A stretch of 41,295 nt of DNA. It comes from Octopus bimaculoides (taxonomy: Eukaryota). The translations under genes were made by a program, and so were the position numbers. Each line of letters starts with the position of its first letter. The first letter of the stretch is position 1. Where the stretch lies: the NCBI RefSeq assembly GCF_001194135.2, contig NC_068999.1, positions 30,192,442-30,233,736 on the forward strand. The letters run 5' to 3'. The notes below the pieces were generated by a model. That model made no database searches, had not been told where the DNA came from, and saw nothing but the letters and a program-made list of their open reading frames with translations. Below, piece after piece: positions 366 to 40,249 of this stretch.

Positions 366-640
366 GCATACATATAGTTATTCATATATACACATATACG
401 TACACTTATAAATGTATACATACCAGTACAGATATACACACTTAATAAAATTTTCTAATCACGTATTCAGTATAGTGTATACAAGATAGAACACTCTCAC
501 GTCTTTCATTAAGCAATTTCTTCTTCGATGTTAATATCTGACATAATTCATCTATACACAGGTTACATGTAGCATCATTAAACTTATACGATCTAGCATG
601 ACTAAGTACTTTCCGATTTTTTTGTAAGATTTCTTACATA

Positions 641-758
641 GGCGCAGGAGTGGCTGTGTGGTAAGTAGAATGCTTACCAACCACATGGTTCCGGGTTCAT
701 TCCTACTGCGTGGCACCTTGGGCAAGTGTCTTCTACTATAGCTCGGGCCGACCAAAGC
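641..758 (+). mobile_element. tRNA-derived SINE, 5' head only
   Basis: Pol III box A-like tggctgtgtggta and box B-like gggttcattcc, followed by caccttgggcaagtg; truncated by the LINE that follows. Confidence 0.75.
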
Positions 759-759
759 A

Positions 760-1946
760 TTCGCCACCTCTTCCCATTTCTGGGTGAGATTGTTCACCCT
801 GTTCATCACCTCTCCCCAGTTCTTCTACCTGGAGATCCGGACCAAACCAGACCCAGAGCAATTTAACCGGTACTTCCGTCCAACGCCCTACAACGCTGTC
901 GTTTGGCTTGGACTCGTCTCTCCAAGTACCGAGCTGCAGGCGCACCGACTTGTCCTGATTAATCTTTGTTGCTGTCACCGCTTCGTACTCCTTTAAGGTA
1001 GAGCCGATCAACTCGATTTTCGAGTTGTCCGACACTATAATGGTGACTTCGTCCGCATAAGCCGACAAGAACATTGCCCATCCTAGATCACGTGGGATGT
1101 CACTCGAAATATCCAGCTTCCTCAGTAATGGCTCGAGAGCTAGCACATACAGAATGAAAGAGAGTGGGTATCCTTGACAGACCGACCGACCGACCGACCG
1201 AGCGATGCTAAACGATTCCGATACATGGCCGTTTGCTTTGACCACCGAACAGATACTGCTATACAACGCAGTGAGCCAGCGACTGAAAACGTGACTGAAG
1301 CCAGCCCCCGCAAGAATAGCCTCCAAGTATTGATGGTCGACCCTGTCAAAAGCTTTTCACTGATCCAAATTGATCAGAGTCCAACCCATGCCAGGTTCCT
1401 TCCCTACCCTCTCTATGATGTAGCGCGTGAGGTGGAGGTAGTTGTGATTAAGTCTGTTCGGAATAGCGCATGTCTGCGCGTTACTGATCAGCCTACTGAC
1501 GACAAGCGCCAACCTCTTGGCTAACACCTCGGCCATATTCTTATAAAATGCGTTCAGCAGAGTTATGGCCCTAAAATTGTTTATTTGGTGCCCCTTGTTC
1601 GGGTCCTTTCTCAGCAGCACCACCACGCCACGCTTTACAACATTGAGTATTCTTTCGTTTTGTTACCAGTAGCGGTAGATATCCACCAAGAGATCACTGA
1701 ACAAGTCTGGTGTATGAAGATAAAGCTCGAAAGGCAGACCATTCAGCCCCGGAGACTTCTCCCTTGTGCATTCGTCATCGCGTCCCGTATTTCTTTGGCT
1801 GTTATCGGCATTTTGAAGAACTCCGCATCCCTGGCCGAAACGCGTGGCATCCCATCAAGGTAGGAGGTGAAATCCACCTCCATCCCCGACACACCGCACG
1901 CCCCGAACACGTTTAGAGTACTCCCGTCCCGGCCCGCCAAAGACCG
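760..1946 (-). mobile_element. Tx1/L1-clade LINE ORF2 reverse transcriptase fragment, copy 1 (degenerate)
   Basis: Frameshifted pieces FRAITLLNAFYKNMAEVLAKRL, LINLDQ*KAFDRVDH, QGYPLSFILYVLALEPLL, AYADEVT, KINQDKS match L1/Tx1 RT domains; (GACC)n expansion near 1177-1200. Confidence 0.9.
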
Positions 1947-1947
1947 A

Positions 1948-2005
<58 letters not shown>
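1948..2005. repeat. (AAT)n microsatellite
   Basis: Pure AAT run. Confidence 0.95.
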
Positions 2006-2007
<2 letters not shown>

Positions 2008-2399
2008 CAACTACAATATCCTTAACTGGACACTAAATGAACTAACGAAAATAGACAGAAAAACAAGAAAAATAATGACAGGATCTGGGATGCACCACCC
2101 AAAATCTGACATAGAAAGGTTATATATACAACGTATAGAAGGTGGTAGAGGCCTAATACATCTGGAAAACTATTATAAAATAACCACTATAGGACTGCAA
2201 AAATACCTACTTCAGAAAAGATGAAACAACAAAAGCTATAAAACAAATGAAATCCAAACTAAAATTAGAACAGCAACGGGCCATGATAAAACGATGGCAA
2301 GAAAAGCCCCCTCATGGCAAATACTGGGCTAAACTAAATGCAAAAGAAATAGACAGAGAAAAACTCCAGCGATGGTTGAGAAGCTCAGGACTCTGGAAA
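2006..2399 (+). mobile_element. R4/Dong-clade non-LTR retrotransposon fragment (RT thumb region)
   Basis: Translates to LNWTLNELTKIDRKTRKIMTGSGMHHPKSDIERLYIQRIEGGRGL and RWQEKPPHGKY...WLRSSGL; starts directly after the (AAT)n run. Confidence 0.8.
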
Positions 2400-3995
2400 T
2401 TATCCATAATGTCCTTCGGAAAAGACCGGCTACATGATCCCTCCCGACTCCCAGAGTTACCCCGAGGACGTCGTTTCTCAAACTCGATACTAATCCACTA
2501 TAGAACTCCATTGTGGAACTTCTACAGATCACGTTGCCCGACTGGCAGAATGCTGTGAGCGCTTGCCGACACTCCAGGTGCCAAGCACCCTTTCTCGGCC
2601 TACGTTTGATCCAAGACTGTAGCTGCGGAAAATTCTGTCTGACAAACGGCGATCACACCTGTTCACCATTAAGAAACCGCTGGAGATGTCGCAGGCTCAA
2701 CGCATATCTGTGCATTATTAGCCACGGCATGTCCAGTCCTCCACTCAGTAGCTGCTGACGAAGAGGAACCGTCTGACGAGTGGAACGCAACCCTTCCACA
2801 GAAATTGAAAGAGCAAGCGCTCTAGCTTGATCAGTCACGAAGCAGGACAAGGGTAAACGGCCAGGCAGTAAGAGATGACGGAAGCGATATACGCATTCAC
2901 TACCTTCCCCCGACCTTTCAAGGATAGCTTCCTCTCTGTCCATTTCTGGGTGAGATTGGTCACCCTACTCATCTCCTCCTCTCAGTTCTTGTCCACCCGG
3001 AGTACCGGACAAAACCAGATCCTGAGCAGTTTAATCGGTACTTCCGTCCAGCACCCTACGATGCATGGACCTGCCTATCTAGGTGCTGAACTCTAGGCCC
3101 ACTGACTTGTCCTGATCAATTTTTGCTGCTGTCACCGCTTCGTAGTCCCGATCAACTCGATTTTCGAGCTGCCCAACACTATTACGGTGACGTCGTCCGT
3201 ATAAACCGACACGAGCCTTCCGCATCCAAGTTCATGCAGGATGCCCCTCGAAATATCTAACTTCCTTGGTAATTGCTCGAGAGCCATCACGTACAAAAGA
3301 GTTGAGTGTGGGTATTCTAGATAGATCGTACAAGCGATGCTAAACAACTCCAATAGGTGGTTGTTTACTTTGACCACTGAACAGATATCGCTGTACATTG
3401 CAGTGACCCAGCCTCTAAAAACGGAACCGAAGCCGGCCACCGTGAGGACAGCCTCCAAGTATTGATAATCAACCCTACTAAAAGCTTTGGACTGATCCAA
3501 ACTTATCAAGGCCCCACCCATGCCAAGTTCCTTCCCTACCCTCTCTATGATGAAGCGCGTGAGGTGGATATTGTCGTGGATAAATCTGTTCTAGATTGTG
3601 CATGTCTGCGCGTCATTGACCAATTTATCGACGACGAGCGCCAACCTCTTGGCTAACCCCTCGGCCAAAATATTATAATCTGCGTTCAGCAGAGTTAAAT
3701 GATCTATTTGGTCCCCTTTGCTCGTGTTCTTCTCAGCAGTACCACCACGCCACGGCTAACAGCACTGGGTATTCTCCCGTTCAGCTGCCAATTGCAGTAG
3801 ATATCCACCAAGAGATCACCGAACAAGTCTGGTGTATGAAGATAAAGCTTGAAGGGTAGACCATTCAACCCCGGAGACTTCTCCCTTGTGCAGCGCGTCA
3901 TCGAGTCCCGTATATCTTTGGCTGTTATCAGTATTTCACAGAACTCCGCGTCCTTGACGAAAGGTGTGGAATGCTGCCGAGGTAGGAGGTGAAAC
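2400..3995 (-). mobile_element. Tx1/L1-clade LINE ORF2 fragment, copy 2 (RT to C-terminal region)
   Basis: KSPGLNGLPFKLY, ALISLDQSKAFSRVDYQYL, VYTDDVTVIV, then C-terminal AGLFRRT; colinear and clearly similar in DNA to copy 1. Confidence 0.9.
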
Positions 3996-4077
3996 TATTA
4001 TTATTATTATTGTTGTTGTTGTTGTTGTTGTTGTTGCTGTTGCTGCTGATGCTACTGTTGTTGTTGTTGTTGTTATT
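3996..4077. repeat. (TTA)/(TTG)/(CTG) compound microsatellite at the 3' end of the minus-strand Dong element
   Basis: Direct reading. Confidence 0.9.
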
Positions 4078-11452: not shown

Positions 11453-11454
11453 TA

Positions 11455-11632
11455 TAAGGTTGAGTAAAACATAAGCAATGTTTTGAACCATGAAGAATTT
11501 GTACCGGATTTTTGCAGAGTTTTGAATTTTTTTAAACATTGTTTTGCAATTGTCTGAGAATACAGACATAGACTTACCCAAATGCATCAATAAATTAACA
11601 TTGATATTTTTTTCACCGCTGCTCCAATCACC
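11455..11632 (+). mobile_element. Mariner transposon left end (left TIR and 5' UTR), preceded by TA at 11453-11454
   Basis: tataaggttgagtaaaacataagcaatgttttgaaccatgaa matches the reverse complement of the right end (tatcaggctgaattaaaagtaagcaacgttttgaaacatgaa) at 34/42 positions including the TA. Confidence 0.85.
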
Positions 11633-12762
11633 GCATAGCTTGCTAGTGTGATTTTGTTTGCGGCTGCGTGCCTACTGTTACGTTCCTCGGAATACTGTTG
11701 CTTGGTTATTATTGTTACCATTGTTGGATCATGTTACCGTTGGATTGTTATTGCTGTTTCGCCTACGGGCTTGTGGTTCTTGTTTGACTTCCTTTCTCTA
11801 GTTTGGGGGAAAGAATTTTGAAATGGAGTATTCGCCAGAAAACGTCGGGAGTTATGCGTCGGCGGCGGGTAGTCGCGCGACCAACGCTACGAACACATTA
11901 GAGGTGTGAGAGGTAGCAATAGGCATCGAGAAGATTGGGAGTCACAGGGAGCTGCTCCAGAAGGAAAGGGAAAGTCTAAGATTGATCCCTCCAGAGGACG
12001 TGACCAATAGTACCAGGAGAAGGATAGTGTTCTACAGACCGCTGTCCTTATCCAGCAAGAAAATTGAGATGGCAGCGGAGGAGGCTATTGAGAAATGCCT
12101 AGAAAGCGTGAAAGCGTAGCCTCTTACTACACCAGAGGAAGAAAGTATGCCACAGTGGAGGTGAGGCTTGCCACTGAAGAAGAATCAATGAATCACTCCA
12201 CTGTGCCTCTGAGATCACAGGAATGCGTACTTCTGCCAACCTACTGAGAATCAGGGTTGGCAGGGTGCCGCCAGAAATAGAGAACCCAGCAGTTGAACGG
12301 CAGTCGAACGGCAGTCGAACACAAGATTACCAAGATTAAGTCGGTGATCAGAGTAAGATTGCCGGCTGAGGCGAACCCGGAATACACCAAATGCATATTA
12401 ATCGACAGAGAAAAGTACACAAAATTAAAAGAATCATTTGGTTCATTGAGGAGGTAGAATATGTTAGGAGCGGAGGCAGAATACGATACCCTATTTCCGG
12501 TTGTAGATTACGAAGACATAATGCAGTACGTGAACTGGTAAATACAGTAAGTAAAATTTTAAATGATGAAAATTTGATAAACTTAAAAAAAACCCAGTTA
12601 AATGTAACCACCCGAGAATGCGGCTCGAGTGGTCATTTCACCCTCATTTTTATGTAATTTCACCTTTTATCCGTTTCACGTTTTTGTCCCCACTTGTTTT
12701 CTTCTGTCTGTCCTTGTCCCGCCCCCTCTATGTTACGCCTTATGGCGGAATAAAAAAAATTT
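11633..12762 (+). mobile_element. Array unit A: ORF1-only Tx1-derived element, internally deleted (no Zn knuckle)
   Basis: 5' UTR tagcttgctagtgtgattttgtttgcggctgcg shared with C and D; ATG 11823 (MEYSPENVGSYASAAG); deletion near 12285-12320; shared 3' tail ending AATAAA + A-run. Confidence 0.85.
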
Positions 12763-12774
12763 GTTACAATCATC

Positions 12775-14533
12775 TCCTAGCTTGCTGGTGTGATTTTGTT
12801 TGAAGGCTTCTGCCCAGTATTGTGAACTGTTGAAATTGTTGGAATTTATTGCTTAATTTGTTGTTGGTTGTTAAAAACACATAGTTTATTCAGCAAGCTT
12901 GTGTTTTTTGTTGTATATTTTCCACCCCCATTTAGGGTGGAAAAATGTCTGAAATGAGGGTGGAGCGCGAGGGAGCACGAGCAGGAAGCTACGCGTCTGT
13001 AGCTGGAAATGGGAACATGGCGAAGACAGTGAGACAGTTGGAAATGCGAGAGGTTATCATTGACCGGGAAGCATAGTGTGACTGCATGCAATTTATAGAA
13101 AGAGAAGGGTTGAGTGTAAAGTTGATCCTCCGGAGGAAACAACCTGTAAAATGAGAAGAACGGTGATGTATAGGACACTGTACTTGCCGAAAAAAAAAAG
13201 ATCGGGATGGTACTGGAGGATGCCATAGAAAAATGCTTAGACACAATAAGAGGCGACATCTCCTTCTCCACCAGAGGTAGGAGATACGGTACAGTGGAGG
13301 TAAGATTTGCCTCCGAAGAGGTGGGAATTTAATCACTCCACTGTACCAATAAGGACTGAAGAAAGGCTACTCCTGCCAACCTACCTAGGGAAACGTGTTT
13401 CTAGAGAGAAGATTGGCAGGATTCCGCCAGAGGTAAAAGAGATATGGATAGCGGCAGCTATACTCACCGGAACAAAGGAAGAGGTAAAAGTTGTTCAGGC
13501 AACTCGAACACAACAATTGAATTGATGGGGTTACGGCCTGAAATTAATCATCCAGGCCACCCAATCGGACCTAAATGAGGTCCATGAAATTATCGAGTTA
13601 CCAGACGATATAAAACTGACGGTGACAGTGGAAGGGAGACCTCCCACCTGATATTGTTGTAGCCAGAAGGGGCACATAAAAAAGTGTCCCCAAAATGTAC
13701 AAGAAGAATAGAGGAACGCAGCTGAGAGCCAAAGCGAGCCTGAGAGCATCGCGAAGGTAACGGAACAGACCCAAGAAGCGATGGAATTAAAACGAACATA
13801 CCAAGAATATTCCGAAAAGGACTACATTGAAGTAACAAGGAAAAGAGAACGAACCAATGCACCACAAAAAAAAGGGAGAGTTGCTCACAAAATAAGACAC
13901 ACACCAGTCAAACGAAATGCAGACAACCCTATAGAACAACGCACCCACACAGCACACATCACTGATATCATCCCCGCAAAAAAAAAAAAAAAAACTGCCC
14001 AGAATATCCCACCAGGCATTCACATGCAGACGCACAACACAGTCAAACCGCACCAGAACACATTGCATGCCTAATGACATACAGAAAAAGTATATCCATA
14101 GAAAATAAAATCACAAAATTAAAAAATATTATTAGAGTCAAACTACCTAAAGACAACGCAGCAGACACAAAATGCATCTTGATTGATGAACAAAGACACA
14201 CAACATTAAAAGAAACATTCACATCCGGTATAGATCCTCTGGAGTTAGGGGTGAGGTTTGACTCTCCCCACCATGGTAGAATATAGTGAACTTACGCCAC
14301 ATTTTGTATGATAAGGAAAAAGACATTAAATAAGATTGTTTTAAACGATTAAAAATTGATGAACTAACAGATAATGAACAGTAAAACGTGACTGCCCGAG
14401 AGGGAAGACATTCATCCTCATTTTGTATATTCATTTCCTTCACTATTTTGTATTTTATGTCCCCACTTGTGTTGTCTCTCCTTGTGCCGTACCTTCTATG
14501 TTACGTCTTTATGGCGAATAAAGAGAAAAAAAC
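12775..14533 (+). mobile_element. Array unit B: ORF1-only Tx1-derived element, divergent subfamily
   Basis: Only the first ~25 bp of the 5' UTR are shared with A/C/D; ATG 12945 (MSEMRVEREGARAGSYASVAG); GTVEVRFASEE, LLLPTYLGK, degenerate knuckle near 13650; shared 3' tail with AATAAA. Confidence 0.85.
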
Positions 14534-14545
14534 GTTAGAATCATC

Positions 14546-16225
14546 TACTAGCTTGCTAGTGTGATTTTGTTTGCGGCTGCGTGCCTACTGTTACGTTCCT
14601 CGGAATACTGTATCTCTGTTATTACTGTTACCGTTGTTGGATCTTGTTACCGTTGTATTGTTATTGCTGTTTCGCCTACGGGCTTGTGGTTTTTGTTATT
14701 CTTTTCGCCAATTTGGGGTAAAGAATTTTGAAATGGAGTATTCACCAGAACACGTCGGGAGCTATGCATCGGCAGCAGGTAGTCGTGCGACAAAAGCTAC
14801 GAAAACATTGGAGGTACGAGAGGTGGCAATAGACCTCGAGAACCTAGGAAGACATAGGGGGCTGCTCCAGAAAGAGGAGGAAAGTCTAAGGCTGACCCAT
14901 CCGGAAGAAGTAACTAACAGTACGGAGAAAAGGACAGTTTTCTACAGACCTCTGTCATTAGACAGCAAAAAGATAAAAATGGCGACAAAGGAAGCCATAG
15001 AAAAGTGTCTGGAGAGTATAAAGAATGCAGAGACATTTTACACTCGAGGAAGAACGTACGGCACACTGGAGGTAAAGTTCGCCACTGAACAAAAGGCAAT
15101 AAACCACTTCACTGTGCCTTTAAGGTCAGAAGAATGGGTACTCCTTCCAACCTATTGCGGCAAAAGTGTCGCAAGGATCAGGGTTGGCAGGGTACCTCCC
15201 GAAATAGAAGAGGCGTGGCTGGTGGTAGCTATAATCTACGATAAAAAAGAAACCAGAATTTTGCAAGTGACAAGGACAAAAGAAGAGAATTGTTGGGTTA
15301 TGGCCTGGAAATGGTAATCCAGGCTACCCAAGAAAATTTAAACTCTATAACGGAGGAAATGCTGTTGGCAGAAGATAGGAAATTGAGGGTGGTAGTGGTG
15401 AGTCGATCGCCCACCTGCTACCACTGTGGAGAGATGGGGTACATAAAAGTAAAGTGCTCCGAGTTGAAAGAAAGTACTGAGACAACTCTAACAATCGACG
15501 AAAACACGGAAGAACCAGACTCGGGGGAATTCACTGAGGTTCCAAAGAGAAAGAGAGGTAGAACAATGTTTTCGCTCCCGAAGAAAAACATAAAGAAAAA
15601 AAGAGGAGTGCAATATGGAAGAAGAGACATACACATTATATAATTGCACACAGTACACATCACCACTGCAAACACCACAAAAAAAAGAAGAAATATTATC
15701 CCAGATAGTCCTAGTTCACCAAATAGGATCCCAACCAGAATTGTAGACAACACACAGCCCTCAAAATCCCCAGGAAACAAAGAACATGTATCATGACATA
15801 CAAAAAAAGTACATCAATAGAACGTAGAACTGCTAAAATTAAGTCGGTAATAATTATAAAATTTCCAGTGTAGGAAAACAAAAAAGGTATCTTAACTGAC
15901 GTAGAAGTATATCAAAAATTAAAAAAAACGATTTGGATCGAACATTGAGCCGTTTGGGATCGGAGGTGGAGTATGATACCTTAACCCCGGCCGTTGACTA
16001 CAAGTTAATGCCATGCAAAGTAAGTTTCTTCTATGATTATAATAGAAGATAAAAGAAGAACTTAAAAAAAGAAAACAGCAAATGTATACCACCCGAGAGT
16101 GGGTCTCGAATGGCCATTTCACCCTCATTTTTGTATAATTTCATCTTTCATTCGTTCCATATTTTTGTCCCCACTTGTATTGTTCTGTCTGTCCTTGTGC
16201 TGTCCCTTTTATGTTGCACTTTTAT
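14546..16225 (+). mobile_element. Array unit C: ORF1-only Tx1-derived element
   Basis: Same 5' UTR as A and D; longest intact ORF1; 3' tail with a modified terminus (no AATAAA seen). Confidence 0.9.
14733..15643 (+). pseudogene. Gag-like ORF1 protein (putative RRM region plus CCHC Zn knuckle) of unit C, one frameshift near 15300
   Basis: MEYSPEHVGSYASAAG...GTLEVKFATEQ...LLPTYCGKSVARIRVGRVPPEI, continuing in another frame as GYGLEMVIQ...RSPTCYHCGEMGYIKVKC and FTEVPKRKR; L1/Tx1-type ORF1 layout. Confidence 0.8.
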
Positions 16226-16237
16226 ACCACATTCGTC

Positions 16238-17983
16238 TACAAGCTTGCTAGTGTGGTTTTGTTTGCGGCTGCGTGCCTACTGTTACGTTCCTCGGAATAC
16301 TGTTGCTTGGTTATTATTGTTACCGTTGTTGGATCTTGTTACCGTTGGGTTGTTATTGTTGTTTCGCCTACGGGCTTATGGTTTTTGTTTGCTATTCTTT
16401 TCGCCAGTATGGGGAAAAGAATTTTGAAATGGAGTGTTCACCAGATCACGTCGGGAGCAATACGTCGGCGGCGGGTAGTCACGCGACCAACGCTACGAAC
16501 ACATTGGAGGTATGAGAGGTGTCAATAGACCTCGAGAAGCTAGGAATATACAGTATGCTGCTCCAGAAGGAGGGTAAGTCTAAGTCTAACTCCTCCGGAA
16601 AAAGTAACTAACAGCACGAGGGAAAGGACAGTTGTCTACAGACCGCTGTCCTTAGCCAGTAAAACATTAGAAATGGCAGCGGAGGAAACCATAGAAAATG
16701 TCTGGGGAGTATAAAGAATGCAGTGACATTTTACACCCAAGGAAGAAGGTACAGCACAGTATAGGTAAGGTTCGCCACTGAACAAAAGGCAATAATCCAC
16801 TTCACTGTGCTTTTAAGGTCAGAGGAATGGGTACTCCTGCCAACCTATTGCGACGAAAGAGTCGCAAGGATCAGGGTTGGCAAGGTACCTCCCGAAATAG
16901 AAGGGGCGTGGCTGGTGGCAGCTATAATCTACGATACAAACGAAACCAGAATTTTGCAAGTGACAAGGACTGAAAACGCGAATTGTTGGGCTATGGCCTG
17001 GAAATGGTGATCCAGGACACCCAAGAAGTTTTTAAAATCTATAACGGAGGAAATGTTGTTGGCAGGAAATAGGAAATTGAGGGTGGTAGTGGAGAGTCGA
17101 TCGCCCACCTGCTACCATTGTGGAGAGTCGATCGCCCACCTGCTACCACTGTGGAGAGTCGATCGACCACCTGCTACCACTGTGGAGAGAAGGAGCACGT
17201 AAAAGTAAAGTGCTCCGAGTTGAAAGAAAGCACCGAGACAACAGCTCTAACAATCGAAGAAAACACGGAAGAACTCGGAGGAATTCACTGAGGTTCCAGA
17301 GAGAAAGAGAGGTAGAACAACGTTTTCGCCCCCGAAGAATAACATAAGGAAAAAAAAAAAGAGGAGTGCAATATGGAAGCCGAGGCATACACATTAGTTA
17401 ATTTCACACAGCACACATCACCACCGCAAACGCCACAAAATGAGAGATATTATCTCAGATAGTCCTAGTTCACCAAATAGGATCCCAACCAGAATTGCAT
17501 GCAACACACAGCCCCACAAAACCCACAGAAAACAAAGAACATATGACATACAAAAAAGTACATCAATAGAACGTAGGATTGCTAAAATTAAGTCGGTAAT
17601 AAGAATAAAGTTCCCAGAGGAGGAAAACAAAAATAAAGGTATCTTAACTCACGTAGAAGGATACCAAAACTTTTTTTTAAATGATTTGGATCGAACATTG
17701 ACCCTTTGGGACCGGGGGTGGAGTACGATACCTTACCTCCGGTCGTTGACTACGACGAGTTAACGCCATTCAAAGTAAGTTCATCCTATGATTATAATAC
17801 AAGATAAAAAAACTTTAAAACAAAATCAGTTAAAACAGAGTGGGTCTCGAGTGGCCATTCCACCCTCATTTTTGTATAATTTCACCTTTCATCTGTTTCA
17901 TGTTTTTGTCCCCACTTGTATTGTTTAGTCTGTCCTTGTGCCGTCCCTTCTATGTTATGCCTTCATGGCGAAATAAAGAAAAT
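16238..17983 (+). mobile_element. Array unit D: ORF1-only Tx1-derived element
   Basis: Same subfamily as A and C (ATG 16429, MECSPDHVGSNTSAAG); 31-bp triplication at 17089-17189; 3' tail with AATAAAGAAAA. Confidence 0.9.
17089..17189 (+). repeat. 3 x 31-bp tandem repeat (GTGGAGAGTCGATCGCCCACCTGCTACCAYT) in the unit D Zn knuckle
   Basis: Direct reading; unit C has a single copy. Confidence 0.95.
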
Positions 17984-17995
17984 GTTACAATCATA

Positions 17996-20123
17996 TCGAC
18001 TTGTTCGTACATGTTTGTACATTGTTCCAAAGGTCAGTAACGTTTATTGCAAGGTGTTTATTGTTGATTTTAGTGGTTTTTGACACTTGCTTTTGCTGCC
18101 TTACGGCAGCTTTGTTGTCGCTGCTCACCTTATTTGAAGAGTGCAGCGCTGTTTGGAAAAAAGAATTATCATAAATTATGAGAACTGAAGCTCCTCAGAG
18201 TTCTCTTCTTCAGAGGAGGAACTAATAAAAGCCCTGGAGAACGCTGACAGAAGCCACCAAAAACAAGTTAATTTGCAAGAAATCGGAAATCATAAGGAGA
18301 TATTAAGAAGGGATTGACACAATGTGAAGGTGTCCCTTCTCTAAGAAGCAATGCAAGATGAGAAGGAGAAGATCATTATTTACAGAGCATTTTCTGTGAA
18401 GAACCAGAAAATGGAAGTAATGACGGTTGCCCAAATTGAAAGGGCGTTAAAGTCAATATAGAGAGAAATTGTTTACCTCAACAGGAGCCGAAAGTTTGGA
18501 ACTGTGGAGGTGCGGTTCTGAGATGCAGCGACCGCAAGGCTACACTCGGCAACCCCTTTAAAAACGGAGGAGGTAGTGCTTCTACCCATATACTTTAGAA
18601 GGCGTACTTCTAGGGTAAGGGTAGAAGACACCCACAGAAATAGACGTAGTCTGGTTAGCGGCTGCTATCCTGTTGGGCTCGGAGGAAAAGGTGGTGGTCC
18701 TCCAAGCCACTTGTACTGCCCACAAGAATTGGCAGGGGCAGGATCTCGATATGATGATCGAGGTCGCTCCGGAAGACCTAGAACAGCTGATAGAGACTAT
18801 AACGATTGAAGACACAATACTGAGGGTTAGAGTGAAGGGCAGGATCCCTCGGTGCTACAAATGTGGCCAAAAAGTTCACATTAGAGTAGACTGCCCTTCA
18901 CTACCGGCAGATATGCAGACGAAGCCCGTGAGCGGAAAGGAAGCCGCACCTTCGCCTCTAGCAGTAACCAGTGCGAAAGTAGAGATAAGTGAAAATAAAG
19001 AGGGAGACGGATGGGAAAATGTGGGAAAAAGGAGAAAGAAAAGGAGGAAGACACAATCTGTGAGTGATAAGCCCCATCCCACGCCAACCCGACTCCTACT
19101 CAAGCCCACTTTGCCCTACCCTTCCTCTGCAGACACCAATCATTTCCCTGCCCCACCCAACACGGAAGAAACAAGCATATGTACACAGGAGTCCTAAATT
19201 TCCTAATCCCTGCTCTGTAAGGAAAGAAAAGGAGTACATCGTTTTTTATGATAAAGCAAATATGAAACTATTAAATGAAGTCTCTTGTTGGGACAAGTCG
19301 CCGGGACTAGACCTGAGAGAGACTCTAGGCTTCAATGATGGTCAACTAGCCGGCTTGTTCCGAAGGACATTTGGGTCAGGAACCTTGGATAACTTCCAAG
19401 GATCCCTGGCTTGACAGTGTTACCGAGGAGCTTTACCAGTTTGCGATAAACTCGCAAGGCATGGTGCCCCTTGTTCACCCATGTGCCCAAGATGCGAGCA
19501 GAACAGGGAAACCGTTCTGCACGCGATTGTACAATGCTCCAAAATTTCTGAAATGTGGGTTACGTTGAACACCTGCTGTCATATCTGGGAAGAGTACAAC
19601 AGTTTTGCGAGTCGATTGTAAAGATTGTTACTCCTGTCTCTTTTAACAAAGAAAGTAAGGCTTGTTTTCTCGCTGTGGCCGCTATAGCGAAAGAAGTGGT
19701 ATGGAAGACCCGCGTGAAAAGAATCATGACAGGCATCGTCATCTTCAGTCTTAGACTCGTTAATTTCCTCATTTACCACCTTAAGAGGAAAATAAGGGTG
19801 GAGAGAAAATGCCTGTTACCTGATATATAATGAAAAAGATGGAAGTCTGTAGCGAGTTTGTTGAGAATGAATGAACCCGCATAGTATTTCCATAAGGTTA
19901 TACAAAAGGTTACAGTGGTGGCTCGGGGCTAGCGGTGTGAAAGCTAACTAAACCCGTCCCCCACTTCATTGTTTGTGTATTTGTTTTGCTAATCATTTTT
20001 TTATCATTCGATTGTATAAATTTTTTTCTTTTCACCTCTGTGCAAAAACCATACTCACCATGGTCTCCTCCCTCATTTGTACCGTCCCTCTATGTTTGAC
20101 GTCCTGTGGGCAATAAAGAAAAG
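17996..20123 (+). mobile_element. Array unit E: bipartite Tx1-derived element (ORF1 + ORF2 C-terminus; endonuclease and RT absent)
   Basis: Distinct 5' UTR; ORF1 with GTVEVRF, LLPIYF, RIPRCYKCGQKVHIRVDCP; then ORF2 C-terminus LAGLFRRTFGSGTLDNFQGSLA, ETVLHAIVQC, AKEVVWKTR (to ~19830); 3' UTR ends ccgtccctctatgtt...AATAAAGAAAA like units A, B and D. Confidence 0.85.
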
Positions 20124-20139
20124 GTTACAATCATCTGAA

Positions 20140-21139
20140 ATGGAAATGTCAAAGCGCAATATTCGAGCAATTTTGCTATTTAACTTTAAAAAAGGACTGA
20201 AAGCATCTGAAACTGCTCGCGATATCAGCAAAACGCTTGGTGAGGAAATGACCAGTGAGTGGTCAGCTCAAAAATGGTTTAAACGATTTCGCAGTGGCAA
20301 CCTGGGCCTTGAATATCAGGAGCGTAGCGTACGCCCATTTGTGGTCGATGACGGTCAATTAAAGACTATCATTGAGAAAGATCTTCATAAAACCAATCGA
20401 GAACTGGCAAAAGAACTTCAAGTTAGCCAGAAAACTGCCTGCAACTATTTGCATGCGATCGGAAAATCAACAAAGCTCGACAAATGGGTACCACACGATT
20501 TGAATGAAAATCAGAAAATGCACAGATATAAAATTTGCTCGTCGCTTCTTCTCGACTGTATTGTAACGATGATAAGTAGATTCTGTACAATAATAAAAAA
20601 AAACCGTTCTTCGCAGTGGCCGGACCAAAATGAAGCACCGAAAACTTTCCCTAAACCCGAGTCTTCAAAAAGGTTATGGTGACTGTTCGGTGGTGTACTG
20701 TTGGACTCATCCACTCTAGCTTCTTTAAACTTCTTATCCACTATAACTACTGAAGAAACATATTGCTATGAAATTGCCGAATGAACGAAAAACTGCTACT
20801 CCTCCGTCCCAGACTGGTCAACAGAAGAGGGCCAATCATTCTTCATGACAATGCTCGACCTCACGTTTCACTAATGACGCTCCAGAAGTTGAGAGAACTT
20901 GGCTACGAAGTTCTTCCTCACCCAGATTATTCCCCAGACCTTTCACCTAGAGACTACCACTTTTTCAAGCCATTTGATGGTTTCTTGCGAGAAAAGGAGT
21001 TCAAAAATCAAACCGATGCTGAAAGTGCGTTCAAAGTATTCAGTTGCAAAACTCCAGATTTTTATGTTACCAGAATAAACAAACTTGTAACTCGTTGGCA
21101 AAATGTGTTGATTGTAATAGTACTTACTTTGATAAATAA
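20140..21139 (+). pseudogene. Mariner (DD34D-type) transposase, frameshifted; N-terminus resembles Hsmar1/cecropia-type elements
   Basis: MEMSKRNIRAILLFNFKKGLKASETARDI, WFKRFRSG, WVPHDL, HDNARPH, YSPDLSPRDYHFF, and TYFDK* in a shifted frame. Confidence 0.92.
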
Positions 21140-21173
21140 AATTTCCGCATTGTTGAAATATATTGTGATGAAT

Positions 21174-21213
21174 TTCATGTTTCAAAACGTTGCTTACTTT
21201 TAATTCAGCCTGA
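21174..21213 (+). mobile_element. Mariner right TIR followed by TA (21214-21215)
   Basis: ttcatgtttcaaaacgttgcttacttttaattcagcctga|ta; inverted match to 11455-11494. Confidence 0.85.
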
Positions 21214-21215
21214 TA

Positions 21216-26899: not shown

Positions 26900-28335
26900 T
26901 TGTAATTTGCTGTAAGTCGCTTCATATAAATCGCTTGTTGTTTAAATGTTGAAGGTCTACTGTACCTAATTGTTGAATTATCGAAATTGTTGAATTGTTG
27001 TGCGTTACCTGTTGGTTTTTGTTTTCTTCCCCATTTATGGGTGACGTTGTTACTAACGAAGTAATGCAGAGTCAACCAGTTCCAGCCGGTAGTTACGCTG
27101 CAGTAACTGGGAAAAGTTTGACGGCGGATATTTTACAAGTAAAAGAGGTGAAGATATATGAGACAAATTTAAAGAATTTGAACAAACTGATAACGAAGGA
27201 AGGAGAAAGACTGCGGTTGACTCCGTCGAAGGAAGTAGTTGAAAGGACAGAAAAAAGGACAGTAATCTACAGAACTCTGTCTATAGCTACCAAAAGAATT
27301 GAGATAGCTGCAGCGGAGGCAGTGGAAGAATGTATAAAGAAATTAAGAGCCTCACAACGTTTTATATTAGAGGCAAGAAATATGGCACAGTGGAGGTTCG
27401 CTTCGCGAGCGAACAAGAAGCGATAAAGCACTCCACTGTGCCTTTGAGATCGTCTGGGTGGGTACTACTGCCAACCTACTGTGGCAAACGTGCGGCAACA
27501 GTTAGGATTAGTAGAGTGCTCCCGGAAAATGACGAGGCGTGGCTGGTGGTAGCCATCCTCTACAACTCAGAAGAGGAGACGAAAATCCTCAAAATTACAA
27601 GAACAACAGAGGTAAACTGTTGGGGATATGGCCTTGAGGTGACGGTCTAAATCAGTTTACTAGACCTCCACAAAATTGTAGAAGAGGAAATATTACCCAA
27701 CGAGACGAAGGTAAGAGTGGTAGTGGAGGGAAGATCTCCCATATGCTTTCAGTGTGGAGTACGGGGACACATGAAGGCTAAGTGTCACCAAAAACACGAA
27801 GAGGAGGTAATGGAGAAGGAACGGCAAGGAGAGGAAGAGGTTCAAGGCATAGAGTAGCAAAGGCCAGTAGAAAATATGGAAGAAAAGTATATAGTGATGA
27901 AGAGAAAGAAGAGAGAAGAAAACGCGGACTTAACACCAAAAAGTCCCATGAAGAAAAGAAAAGGAAGTGTAGAGGAGAGACTAGGTTTACCAAAAGGAAG
28001 AAAAGCGAACAAGCAGAAAAGAAACGAGATGTCGGCAAAATAAAGCGAGAAAGACGTAGAGAGAAAACAGAGATCGATACAAGCAACTAGCATGGAGGAG
28101 AAAGTAAAAGGGCAGGAAATAAAAGGAAGATAGAAGAGGAATGACAACAATTGAGTGAGATACAAGCAGAGAAGAAAGAGATGGAAACACCAGCAACAGT
28201 AGAAGAGATTAGTGATGGAAATCAGAAAGAAACACTGAAGGGAAAACAATTAAGAACTACGATACAGTACAGAAAAAAATGTGGAGATTGAAAAAAAGAT
28301 CACGCAAATGAAAAATGTAATTAGGGTGAAGTTAG
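26900..28335 (+). mobile_element. Unit F: solitary ORF1-only Tx1-derived element, 3'-truncated; both boundaries approximate
   Basis: ATG 27064 MQSQPVPAGSYAAVTG, TEKRTVIYRTLS, GTVEVRFASEQ, VLLPTYCGKR, CWGYGLEV, CFQCGVRGHMKAKC, and C-terminal IEKKITQMKNVIRVKL as in units A-D. Confidence 0.85.
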
Positions 28336-28639
28336 GGCCCACTGAGTACAATGAAGGATTAAAAGCAGTTTTGCATGTAAAACATTCAATTTGGAACCAT
28401 TCAGAGCAAACAGTTCAGTATCATTTGAGCTTGGTCTATTAGATAAGAGTGCTGTATTATCTGCGGAGTCCATATCTGTGATGGTTACTGCTGGCACTCA
28501 TGATCATTACTGATCTATGATGAAACCAAGGATCATGCATTGCATAATCCAATACAGATACAAACAAATATGGTGCAGGTGTATCTCCTTGTAGCACCCC
28601 AACTAGTATTTGAAAGAATTTAGAGCACTAAAAATTGAC

Positions 28640-31719: not shown

Positions 31720-32260
31720 ACCTGCCTTTGATATTGCTGTACCTCTTATGTGTCCATAGCTTGCACTAGGTACATCTTATAGAGTTTCTACCTACACCTT
31801 TTTCTACAGATCGAGCAGGGCAATCTACCTGAAGGGGTTTGTGTTTTGTCTACCTTCCTACTTATTAGGACTTTGGTTTTAGCTAGGTTGACTCTAAGGC
31901 CCTTCGATTCTAGTCCTTGCTTCCACACCTGAAACTTCTCCTCTAGTTCTGATAGTGACTCAGCAATTAGTGCAAGGTTACCAGCAGAGAGGAGCTCCCA
32001 AGGCCTTCCTATCTTGAATTCCTCTATTATCGCCTGAATAAATAGGAGGAGGCTGAGGACAGAACCTTGGTGGACCCCTACCTCTACCCGGAATTCTTCG
32101 CTGTACTCATTGCTAACCCTCACCTTACTGATAGCATCTCTGTACATGCCTCGCACAGCTCTCACTAACCATTCTTCTATCCCTAGTTTCCTCATTGACC
32201 ACTAGATAAGGGATCGGGGGACCCTGTCAAACGCTTTCTCCATGTCAACGAAAGCCAGGT
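31720..32260 (-). mobile_element. RTE-clade LINE RT fragment
   Basis: KAFDRVP, MRKLGIEEWLVRAVRGMY, VGVHQGSVLSLLLF, PWELLSAGNLALIAES, GLRVNLAKTKVL. Confidence 0.9.
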
Positions 32261-32342: not shown

Positions 32343-32431
32343 ANNNNNNNNNNNNNNNNNNNNNNNNNNNNNNNNNNNNNNNNNNNNNNNNNNNNNNNNN
32401 NNNNNNNNNNNNNNNNNNNNNNNNNNNNNNN
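32343..32431. other. Assembly gap within a degenerate CA/CAC-rich tract; other gaps at 36493-37163 and 39401-39500
   Basis: Runs of N flanked by simple repeats. Confidence 0.95.
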
Positions 32432-34784: not shown

Positions 34785-35075
34785 GGTAATTTTTCAGATT
34801 AACATCCGCACGATTACGTAACCCTAACCCTAACCCCTAACCCTAACCCTAACCCTAAGCCCTAACCCTAAAACCCTAACCTTGACCCTAAAACCGTAAC
34901 CGTAACACTAACCCTAATCGTAACCCTAACCTTAAACCCTAACCTTAAACCCTAACCTTAAACCCTAACCCTAAACACTAACCCTAACCCTAAACACTAA
35001 CCCTGACACTGACGCAAAAACCGTAACCCTAACACCCTAGTGAAAATCGTGCGGGTGTTAATCTGAAAAATGACC
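34785..35075. mobile_element. MITE with 31-bp TIRs enclosing a degenerate (CCCTAA)n telomere-type tract
   Basis: ggtaatttttcagattaacatccgcacgatt (34785-34815) versus aatcgtgcgggtgttaatctgaaaaatgacc (35045-35075) is an inverted match at 29/31; flanks cacatttc / tacatttg match 6/8. Confidence 0.8.
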
Positions 35076-36430: not shown

Positions 36431-37163
36431 CCTCTGCCGATCAAACTCCCAACCGACAACTAAGGTAGAAGTGTATATATATATATATATATNNNNNNNN
36501 NNNNNNNNNNNNNNNNNNNNNNNNNNNNNNNNNNNNNNNNNNNNNNNNNNNNNNNNNNNNNNNNNNNNNNNNNNNNNNNNNNNNNNNNNNNNNNNNNNNN
36601 NNNNNNNNNNNNNNNNNNNNNNNNNNNNNNNNNNNNNNNNNNNNNNNNNNNNNNNNNNNNNNNNNNNNNNNNNNNNNNNNNNNNNNNNNNNNNNNNNNNN
36701 NNNNNNNNNNNNNNNNNNNNNNNNNNNNNNNNNNNNNNNNNNNNNNNNNNNNNNNNNNNNNNNNNNNNNNNNNNNNNNNNNNNNNNNNNNNNNNNNNNNN
36801 NNNNNNNNNNNNNNNNNNNNNNNNNNNNNNNNNNNNNNNNNNNNNNNNNNNNNNNNNNNNNNNNNNNNNNNNNNNNNNNNNNNNNNNNNNNNNNNNNNNN
36901 NNNNNNNNNNNNNNNNNNNNNNNNNNNNNNNNNNNNNNNNNNNNNNNNNNNNNNNNNNNNNNNNNNNNNNNNNNNNNNNNNNNNNNNNNNNNNNNNNNNN
37001 NNNNNNNNNNNNNNNNNNNNNNNNNNNNNNNNNNNNNNNNNNNNNNNNNNNNNNNNNNNNNNNNNNNNNNNNNNNNNNNNNNNNNNNNNNNNNNNNNNNN
37101 NNNNNNNNNNNNNNNNNNNNNNNNNNNNNNNNNNNNNNNNNNNNNNNNNNNNNNNNNNNNNNN

Positions 37164-39357: not shown

Positions 39358-40249
39358 GAGTGTATGTGCGTATATGTATATGTGTATATATATATATATA
39401 NNNNNNNNNNNNNNNNNNNNNNNNNNNNNNNNNNNNNNNNNNNNNNNNNNNNNNNNNNNNNNNNNNNNNNNNNNNNNNNNNNNNNNNNNNNNNNNNNNNN
39501 ATATGCATATATATATACACATACACATTACAAATAATAAAATAAATAGAGAAATACAATTGAAAATCTAAGCTGATTTGCAAATAACTTGCAAACGAAA
39601 GTGCTACCAGTCGAGAACTCCGCATACCGGAAGCCAGCAAATGCATGTGGTCATCAGGAGAGAATGCGCGCCGTTTCGGGGCCTATCTCTCGAGCCCCCA
39701 CCTCACTGATATGAGATCCCGCTTACTAAATCAACTGGTTATCAAATAAAGCTCAATATTCTTCTTAGCTATCACTCATCGTCTCTTTTTAACCAAATCT
39801 AGTGGCTAGCCTTTTCCACTGTAGTTTATTATATTATAATATAATATGATATAATATAATATAATATAATATAAAATATAATATAATGTAAAATGATATA
39901 ACTAATCTTTAAAAAAAGCCCAAATAAAGCCAGCAATTTGTTTCGACTTATATACATTATTTGATTTATAAACTATTCATATCCATGTATACAAGTCTCT
40001 TCAGGGCCTAGGTTTAAAAAGACAGACGAAATTCCATGTAAAAGGACTGCTGATTGCATAATACTGATTCAAAATACCTATGTTTAGGAGCGTGAGCCTT
40101 AACAATTCAAATACAACAAAAGAACAACAAAATTCAAATGGATAAATTAAGTAAAGAAAATACGTAACGGTCAAAAAATGGTTATATATATCTCCAATAA
40201 TTAGTAATTTAAATGTATTTAAATCGAAAGTAATCACTTACCATTTTAA

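Follow-up and report, generated by a model that had tools for sequence, protein, structure and literature searches.

An old octopod mariner copy in the genome of Octopus bimaculoides has probably received at least four, and possibly five, insertions of non-autonomous derivatives of long interspersed nuclear elements (LINEs) of the L1/Tx1 superfamily. It lies in a stretch of 41,295 nucleotides from contig NC_068999.1 (assembly GCF_001194135.2, positions 30,192,442 to 30,233,736 of the forward strand; hereafter the window, to which all coordinates below refer unless stated otherwise). Five retroelement units, A to E, lie head to tail on the + strand between the two halves of this mariner (Table 1), and a copy of the sequence GTTACAATCATC (hereafter the 12-mer) is present at each unit boundary.

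The mariner (11455-21213) is a single decayed copy of the DD34D type with TA duplications on both sides. Its halves (178 and 1078 bp) lie 8.5 kb apart and add up to 1256 bp, a normal mariner length, and its ends pair with each other as imperfect terminal inverted repeats (TIRs) of about 40 bp. The N-terminus of the transposase matches Pfam HTH_48 (1.8e-18). Reading the translation by eye, we found HDNARPH followed by D 34 residues on (DD34D); the first catalytic D falls in a decayed stretch. A protein search with the transposase N-terminus matched only "SETMAR-like" proteins from Octopus vulgaris and Octopus sinensis and one short-read contig.

The six copies of the 12-mer match it in 9, 12, 11, 7, 11 and 12 of 12 bases from left to right. 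Copies with at most one mismatch occur four times in the whole window, compared to 0.18-0.31 expected, and all four lie exactly on unit boundaries. The nature of this sequence is revealed by uninterrupted copies of the same mariner family in O. vulgaris (L001) and O. sinensis (L002), which come from the contigs encoding two mariner relatives and are 79-81% identical to the window mariner. At the site they read ..CACTGTAGTTATAATAATCTGAAATGG and ..CACCGTTGTTACAATCATCTGAAAAGG, respectively; both follow the pattern ..TTTTTTCAC(C/T)GT(T/A), 12-mer, TGAAA(T/A)GG, with no LINE sequence. Because these empty copies carry the 12-mer once, directly before TGAA-ATG, it is part of the mariner target, repeated between the units as target-site duplications (TSDs). 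The original prediction for this region had described a mariner split by an 8.5-kb insert into halves that sum to a normal length, five + strand units head to tail, and the 12-mer copies, including the tgaaATG after the copy at 20124. All of this is borne out, as is its reading of the 12-mer as a TSD: the first check it proposed was that empty mariners have the sequence once, and they do. The length it gave may need adjusting, however. In the mariner the 12-mer is followed by T, and four of the five units also start with T, so that the duplication could extend to 13 bp (hence 12-13 bp below); at the A|B junction two further upstream bases also match. The 12-mer copies have no derived substitutions in common and do not allow the order of insertion to be inferred; the most intact unit, C, is the middle one.

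Judged on the window alone, the 12-mer always comes after an element tail and might be taken for the 3' or 5' end of the retroelement itself, its association with the mariner being a coincidence. This is extremely improbable, since LINE-free mariners in two species have the 12-mer in the same place and the leftmost copy in the window follows the mariner 5' untranslated region (5'UTR), not a LINE tail. In addition, a second filled mariner, L003, has a 12-mer copy (CTTACAGTCATC) whose substitutions are those of the L003 mariner.

The short-read contig L003 (900 bp) was retrieved solely via its mariner N-terminus and is present as the same contig in 4 samples. It consists of a LINE tail (..TTTAAATAGAGAAATAT), then CTTACAGTCATC, then TAAAATGGAAC.., and the tail joins CTTACAGTCATC-TAAAATGG at precisely the nucleotide seen in the window, with the orientation likewise unchanged. 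The mariner part is 82.6% identical to the window mariner, while the LINE part aligns best with the 3' ~380 nt of unit B (74%). As E, not B, adjoins the ATG in the window, L003 represents a separate locus where another element occupies this nucleotide. Of three mariner copies sampled regardless of LINE content, one is thus filled, and at the very same position. When metagenomes were scanned for the site, only three chance matches with no mariner around them turned up. The recorded gene call at 424-771 of L003 contains an in-frame TGA and does not give its listed product under standard stop codons; the gene caller seems to have used another genetic code, which matters for exact-protein look-ups on eukaryotic contigs.

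Two filled mariners could also arise without any target specificity, if a LINE had landed by chance in one mariner and the filled copy had then spread by mariner transposition. Kojima had to weigh the same option for the crocodilian element SINEU-3 (PMC4494074), and L003 is only 900 bp long with its left side unseen. Nevertheless, such hitch-hiking is very unlikely here: the ATG is adjoined by E in the window and by a B-like element in L003, the LINE part of L003 has diverged further from B than the two mariner parts have from each other, and at least four different elements at one nucleotide in one copy would be left unexplained.

Table 1. Features of the mariner and of the retroelement array within it (positions in the window).
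Feature	Position	Strand	Remarks
TA duplication of mariner, left	11453..11454		TIR alignment
Mariner left TIR and 5'UTR, ending in the leftmost 12-mer copy	11455..11632	+	Aligns 81-90% with L001/L002; TIR
Leftmost, decayed 12-mer copy GCTCCAATCACC (9/12)	11621..11632	+	Follows mariner 5'UTR
Unit A: 5'UTR, ORF1 (ATG 11823), ~550-bp internal deletion removing the CCHC region, C-terminal domain ..VNW and stop, 3' tail	11633..12762	+
12-mer copy GTTACAATCATC (12/12)	12763..12774	+
Unit B: distinct subfamily, own 5'UTR past first ~40 nt, decayed ORF1, 3' tail	12775..14533	+
12-mer copy GTTAGAATCATC (11/12)	14534..14545	+
Unit C, most intact: ~190-nt 5'UTR, ORF1 from ATG 14733, 3'UTR without terminal ATGGCGAATAAAG	14546..16225	+
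Degenerate 12-mer copy ACCACATTCGTC (7/12)	16226..16237	+	End of unit C here also lacks the ATGGCGAATAAAG tail
Unit D: ~87-93% identical to C throughout, C's frameshift present	16238..17983	+
12-mer copy GTTACAATCATA (11/12)	17984..17995	+
Unit E: unrelated 5'UTR, ORF1 of the same protein family (CCHC CYKCGQKVHIRVDC), ORF2 C-terminal remnant, 3'UTR	17996..20123	+
Rightmost 12-mer copy GTTACAATCATC (12/12), then tgaaATG	20124..20135	+	Contiguous with remaining mariner
Mariner right part: TGAA, decayed transposase (ATG 20140, HTH_48, DD34D), right TIR	20136..21213	+
TA duplication of mariner, right	21214..21215		TIR alignment

None of the units is truncated at the 5' end, and all share the orientation of the mariner. 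In A-D, a 5'UTR is followed by one complete open reading frame (ORF1) of ~400 aa with a CCHC knuckle and then by a 3'UTR, with no ORF2. The ORF1 protein begins with an N-terminal part, followed by a conserved core (..YTRGRxYGTVEVRFA..LLPTY..RIRVGRVPPE..), a C-X2-C-X4-H-X4-C knuckle and a linker rich in lysine; its C-terminal domain ends in ..VNW and the stop. This layout is supported by P0007, an O. bimaculoides protein of 404 aa, which aligns from start to stop with the A-D region up to the terminal W and stop codon, the 3'UTR following directly. We considered the region after the knuckle in A-D as a possible ORF2 remnant and rejected this, as the alignment with P0007 identifies it as the C-terminal domain of ORF1. 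The C-X2-C-X4-H-X4-C motif is present in D, in E and in a sixth member of the ORF1 family elsewhere in the window (copy F, 26900-28450, + strand), which has an intact knuckle (CFQCGVRGHMKAKC) and a 5'UTR distinct from the others, its ORF1 being ~69% identical to that of C. In E, Pfam zf-CCHC scores 19.9 bits, with a cut-off of 20.8 bits. No RRM was found in ORF1 by Pfam, and the model of ORF1 that AlphaFold built from an alignment of window sequences alone was too poor to use (predicted local distance difference test score 38).

The units have also accumulated damage of their own. In C, ORF1 carries a 1-nt-deletion frameshift near 15292, ahead of a CCHC-type knuckle in which H has become Y (~15413-15460), the K-rich linker and the C-terminal domain. 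Unit D has a 31-bp tandem triplication (17089-17189) repeating the start of the knuckle (..SRSPTCYHCGE..). Where unit A lost ~550 bp relative to C and D, there is an 11-bp tandem repeat (GCAGTCGAACG, 2.9 copies, 12289-12320), which may be a repair scar of the deletion.

Unit E continues after ORF1 with ~600 nt of an ORF2 C-terminus, recognised by Pfam as zf-RVT (3.1e-7, ~19421-19558). All five units and L003 have a conserved end of ~60 nt (..CTATGTTA.GCCTT.ATGGCGAATAAAGAAAA, ending AATAAAGAAAA(n)), and E therefore ties both the ORF1 family and the common tail to a LINE ORF2. Apart from this zf-RVT remnant, Pfam found neither RVT_1 nor Exo_endo_phos in units A-E. As no unit contains reverse transcriptase (RT) or endonuclease sequence, all five are non-autonomous. 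No inverted repeats were found within the array, and alifold gave only a 4-bp hairpin on the unit tails, which we do not count as evidence.

The units are far from uniform. The 5'UTRs of A, C and D are mutually 90-93% identical, B matches them only over the first ~40 nt, and E is unrelated in its 5'UTR, with nucleotide similarity to A-D only in the last ~60 nt. Compared to 90% in the 5'UTR, the ORF1 of A is only 71-72% identical to those of C and D (28-29% different), and these differences are concentrated at third codon positions: 39, 32 and 85 at positions 1, 2 and 3 between A and C (85/156 third; p=1e-7), and 43, 35 and 71 between A and D (71/149 third; p=7.5e-4). This excess implies that A diverged from C and D while ORF1 was functional and under purifying selection, before insertion. 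The argument made in the original prediction, that the subfamily differences speak against amplification of one unit, is thus upheld by the three kinds of 5'UTR (A/C/D, B and E) and strengthened by the codon positions.

A number of observations weigh against this account. Between C and D, the differences are evenly spread over codon positions (21, 22 and 30; p=0.37), and both have the 1-nt deletion frameshift, which is absent from B, E and F. They may result from a duplication in situ or be two copies of one defective master. C and D are therefore possibly one event, which leaves at least four independent insertions at one nucleotide; of the "five different" elements originally proposed, the five units stand, but C and D may not count separately. 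Only four mariner copies have been examined, two filled (window and L003) and two empty (L001 and L002). Copy F is not flanked by this mariner, and hence either some relatives do not target this mariner, or F belongs to a subfamily with another target. All copies are decayed, and none is demonstrably active. Protein searches of a word-indexed database with the ORF2 remnant of E and with the ORF1 of C gave no matches at all. With neither an RT or endonuclease in the array nor a partner found, the clade and enzymology can only be inferred.

Taken further, the resemblance of C and D might suggest that a single insertion, with its 12-mer, was amplified in tandem in situ by unequal crossing-over and diverged later. 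That C and D are 87-93% identical over their full length, with the even differences and common frameshift just described, is what such a process would produce. As an explanation of the array it is unlikely, however. The 5'UTRs of B and E are unrelated, E has no nucleotide similarity to A-D beyond the tail, and the third-position excess places the divergence of A from C and D among functional elements prior to insertion. At most, amplification covers the C-D pair.

The array could also have been produced during assembly, by collapsing separate filled mariners or chaining them via their common tails and heads. The scaffold is a draft with N gaps (32344-32431, 36493-37163 and 39401-39500), and no independent assembly of the locus was retrieved: six ORFs of the window, one of which runs across the C|D junction, were looked up as exact proteins, and none was on record. 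Still, an artefact appears highly unlikely. There are zero gaps within 11.4-21.3 kb, and each junction passes from tail through 12-mer to head without any mariner flank, an arrangement that only a tandem array gives. The exact sequence common to the junctions (12 nt, plus heads at 88-92%) is also too short and diverged for typical k-mers to be chained.

We therefore return to repeated insertion at one site, for which we propose the following mechanism. To judge from the junctions, an autonomous partner would supply an endonuclease with two nick sites in the mariner 5'UTR: one in the bottom strand, at CCGTT|GTTAC, and one in the top strand, 12-13 bp farther downstream and 4 bp short of the transposase ATG. 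Target-primed reverse transcription of an RNA ending in the common ~60-nt tail would then place the element in mariner orientation and duplicate the 12-mer. Every insertion would regenerate the site, so that later arrivals would line up head to tail, each separated from the next by exactly one 12-mer. The ORF1-only units A-D, as well as E (an internally deleted LINE that kept the C-terminal zinc finger of ORF2), would be mobilised in trans, presumably by a Tx1-clade element with an apurinic/apyrimidinic endonuclease (APE) and RT. The units might also use the mariner promoter.

An AATAAA lies ~6-10 nt before the 12-mer, and transcripts of the units would therefore extend into the target sequence. 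In the site-specific LINE R1Bm, read-through target sequence aids priming, and the same could apply here. Read-through might, however, also allow part of the array to arise by template jumping. In that case the RT, on reaching the 5' end of one RNA, would switch to the 3' end of a second, read-through RNA that includes the downstream 12-mer, laying down concatemers from one or a few integrations. The completeness of every unit at its 5' end would fit, as would transcripts that naturally reach the 12-mer. We find this quite unlikely all the same, given that sequential insertion is simpler and has been adopted for tandem SINEU-3 copies (PMC4494074).

An exhaustive HMMER search gave 442 protein matches to the ORF1 family at E<=1e-3. 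Of ten matches looked up, six were named, and all six were octopod (O. bimaculoides, O. sinensis, O. vulgaris and Argonauta hians). None of the HMMER matches contained ORF2, the long ones being ORF1 fused to unrelated host domains. Annotated octopus proteins P0016, P0093 and P0075, for instance, consist of an ORF1 fragment fused to WD40 or LDL-receptor class A domains; such fusions are probably gene-model artefacts of unmasked copies.

The assignment of the units to Tx1 made in the original prediction is plausible at most, with no RT in the array and no RRM match in Pfam speaking against a firmer call. It is favoured by the zf-RVT tail in E and by the CCHC-bearing ORF1, which would fit Tx1-type elements, whose ORF1 proteins are reported to be Type-I-like with RRM and CCHC (PMC5203782). 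Target specificity is a hallmark of many Tx1 families (PMC4494074), and here it is seen in the window stack and L003, out of four mariner copies. Neighbouring RT fragments on the minus strand (600-4000) belong to the L1 superfamily (1.8e-11 to human L1 ORF2p vs 7e-3 to R2) and share a TLG..AGLFRRT motif with unit E. In published mollusc surveys, LINEs of the L1 superfamily go under the names L1-Tx1 or Tx1, and 13 L1-Tx1 families are listed as recently active in O. vulgaris.

The original prediction supposed that no mariner-targeting system had been described. This is not the case: Kojima (2015, PMC4494074) named crocodilian Tx1 families ("Tx1-Mar") which, together with SINEU, insert preferentially into Mariner-N4_AMi at two positions. 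In that study, tandem SINEU-3 copies sandwiching a 16-bp TSD were read as sequential insertions, and other crocodilian Tx1 families were found to target Harbinger or long terminal repeat elements. Like these, the octopus array shows preferred, defined positions inside a mariner, tandem copies with one TSD between them, and non-autonomous partners on the same target. However, the host is a mollusc and not a reptile. The crocodilian sites lie near 240 (antisense) and 830 (sense), whereas the octopus site is in another mariner family, in the 5'UTR 4 bp before the ATG, and is used in sense. The TSD is ~16 bp there and 12-13 bp here. Crocodilian partners are short interspersed nuclear elements headed by small nuclear RNA (snRNA), whereas those in the octopus are ORF1-only or ORF2-deleted LINE derivatives; an Rfam scan of the array found nothing, including no snRNA or transfer RNA heads like those of SINEU and some Tx1-Mar families. 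The likeness to Tx1-Mar is thus one of behaviour only, as the Tx1-Mar RT clusters with Keno and the octopus array has no RT to compare.

Comparable habits are known more widely. Tx1L in Tx1D of Xenopus is the classic case, and Keno (U2), Kibi and Koshi (microsatellites) and Tx1-9_AMi (Harbinger) likewise use a specific sequence in a multicopy target, DNA transposons included. These are APE-type LINEs of the L1/Tx1 group with different targets, a group in which membership of the octopus units is no more than plausible. The R1 and R2 LINEs of ribosomal DNA likewise return to a single site in a multicopy target, R2 being dependent on target transcription (PMC4494074). R2 differs in its restriction-like endonuclease, while affinity to the L1 superfamily is indicated here by the zf-RVT tail of E and by the RT fragments nearby. 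In architecture, units A-D are the same as HAL1 ("half-L1"), a non-autonomous, ORF1-only LINE derivative of mammals that is mobilised in trans (PMC5753468), and A versus C/D shows selection on ORF1. HAL1, though, derives from mammalian L1, has a Type II ORF1 protein and lacks site specificity, whereas the octopus ORF1 has a CCHC knuckle and belongs to an octopod family.

A literature search, which did not cover Repbase entries, found no report of such targeting in cephalopods or other molluscs. What is new here is the phylum, the mariner, the 5'UTR site and the ORF1-only passengers; the kind of system is already known from crocodilians. The array extends LINE targeting of transposons from vertebrates (Tx1L/Tx1D and Tx1-Mar) to a mollusc, with a different mariner and a very precise site, and suggests that L1/Tx1-type elements have repeatedly found a safe harbour in multicopy DNA transposons. 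It also provides a clean case of ORF1-only (HAL1-like) elements outside mammals. The 12-13-bp duplication and the precise 5' and 3' junctions offer a defined substrate for studying sequence recognition by APE-type endonucleases, which is relevant to targeted insertion by site-specific LINEs. For octopus genomics, it accounts for one class of nested repeat arrays that automated annotation would break up into unrelated pieces.

More tentatively, though this is less likely than not, these elements might represent an octopod lineage of L1/Tx1-type LINEs independent of Tx1-Mar, with an endonuclease for a 12-13-bp site in the mariner 5'UTR, 4 bp ahead of the ATG, and insertion always in sense. Such a lineage would borrow the mariner promoter while severing the transposase from it, and would have given rise to ORF1-only derivatives in which ORF1 continued under selection. 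If true, this would be transposon-on-transposon parasitism, with mariners convergently chosen as a safe harbour.

The window holds further LINE remnants. The minus-strand RT fragments at 600-4000 are two 5'-truncated L1-superfamily copies in tandem, with mutual similarity starting at ..TTCACCTCCTACCT.. and with (CAA)n/(ATA)n and (ATT)n microsatellites at their borders (1948-2006 and 4010-4074). They may represent a microsatellite-targeting Tx1-like family or a duplicated block. From ~28.5 kb, the 3' part of copy F is replaced by a 5'-truncated RT of another LINE type (..GKAAGPDELYSKVIK..). Another RT fragment (31788-32195, minus strand; Pfam RVT_1, 4.7e-5) adjoins a CA-rich low-complexity stretch and the 88-bp N gap at 32344-32431. 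Finally, an interstitial telomere-type repeat, (TAACCC)n, occupies 34819-35004 with ~29 copies at 76% match.

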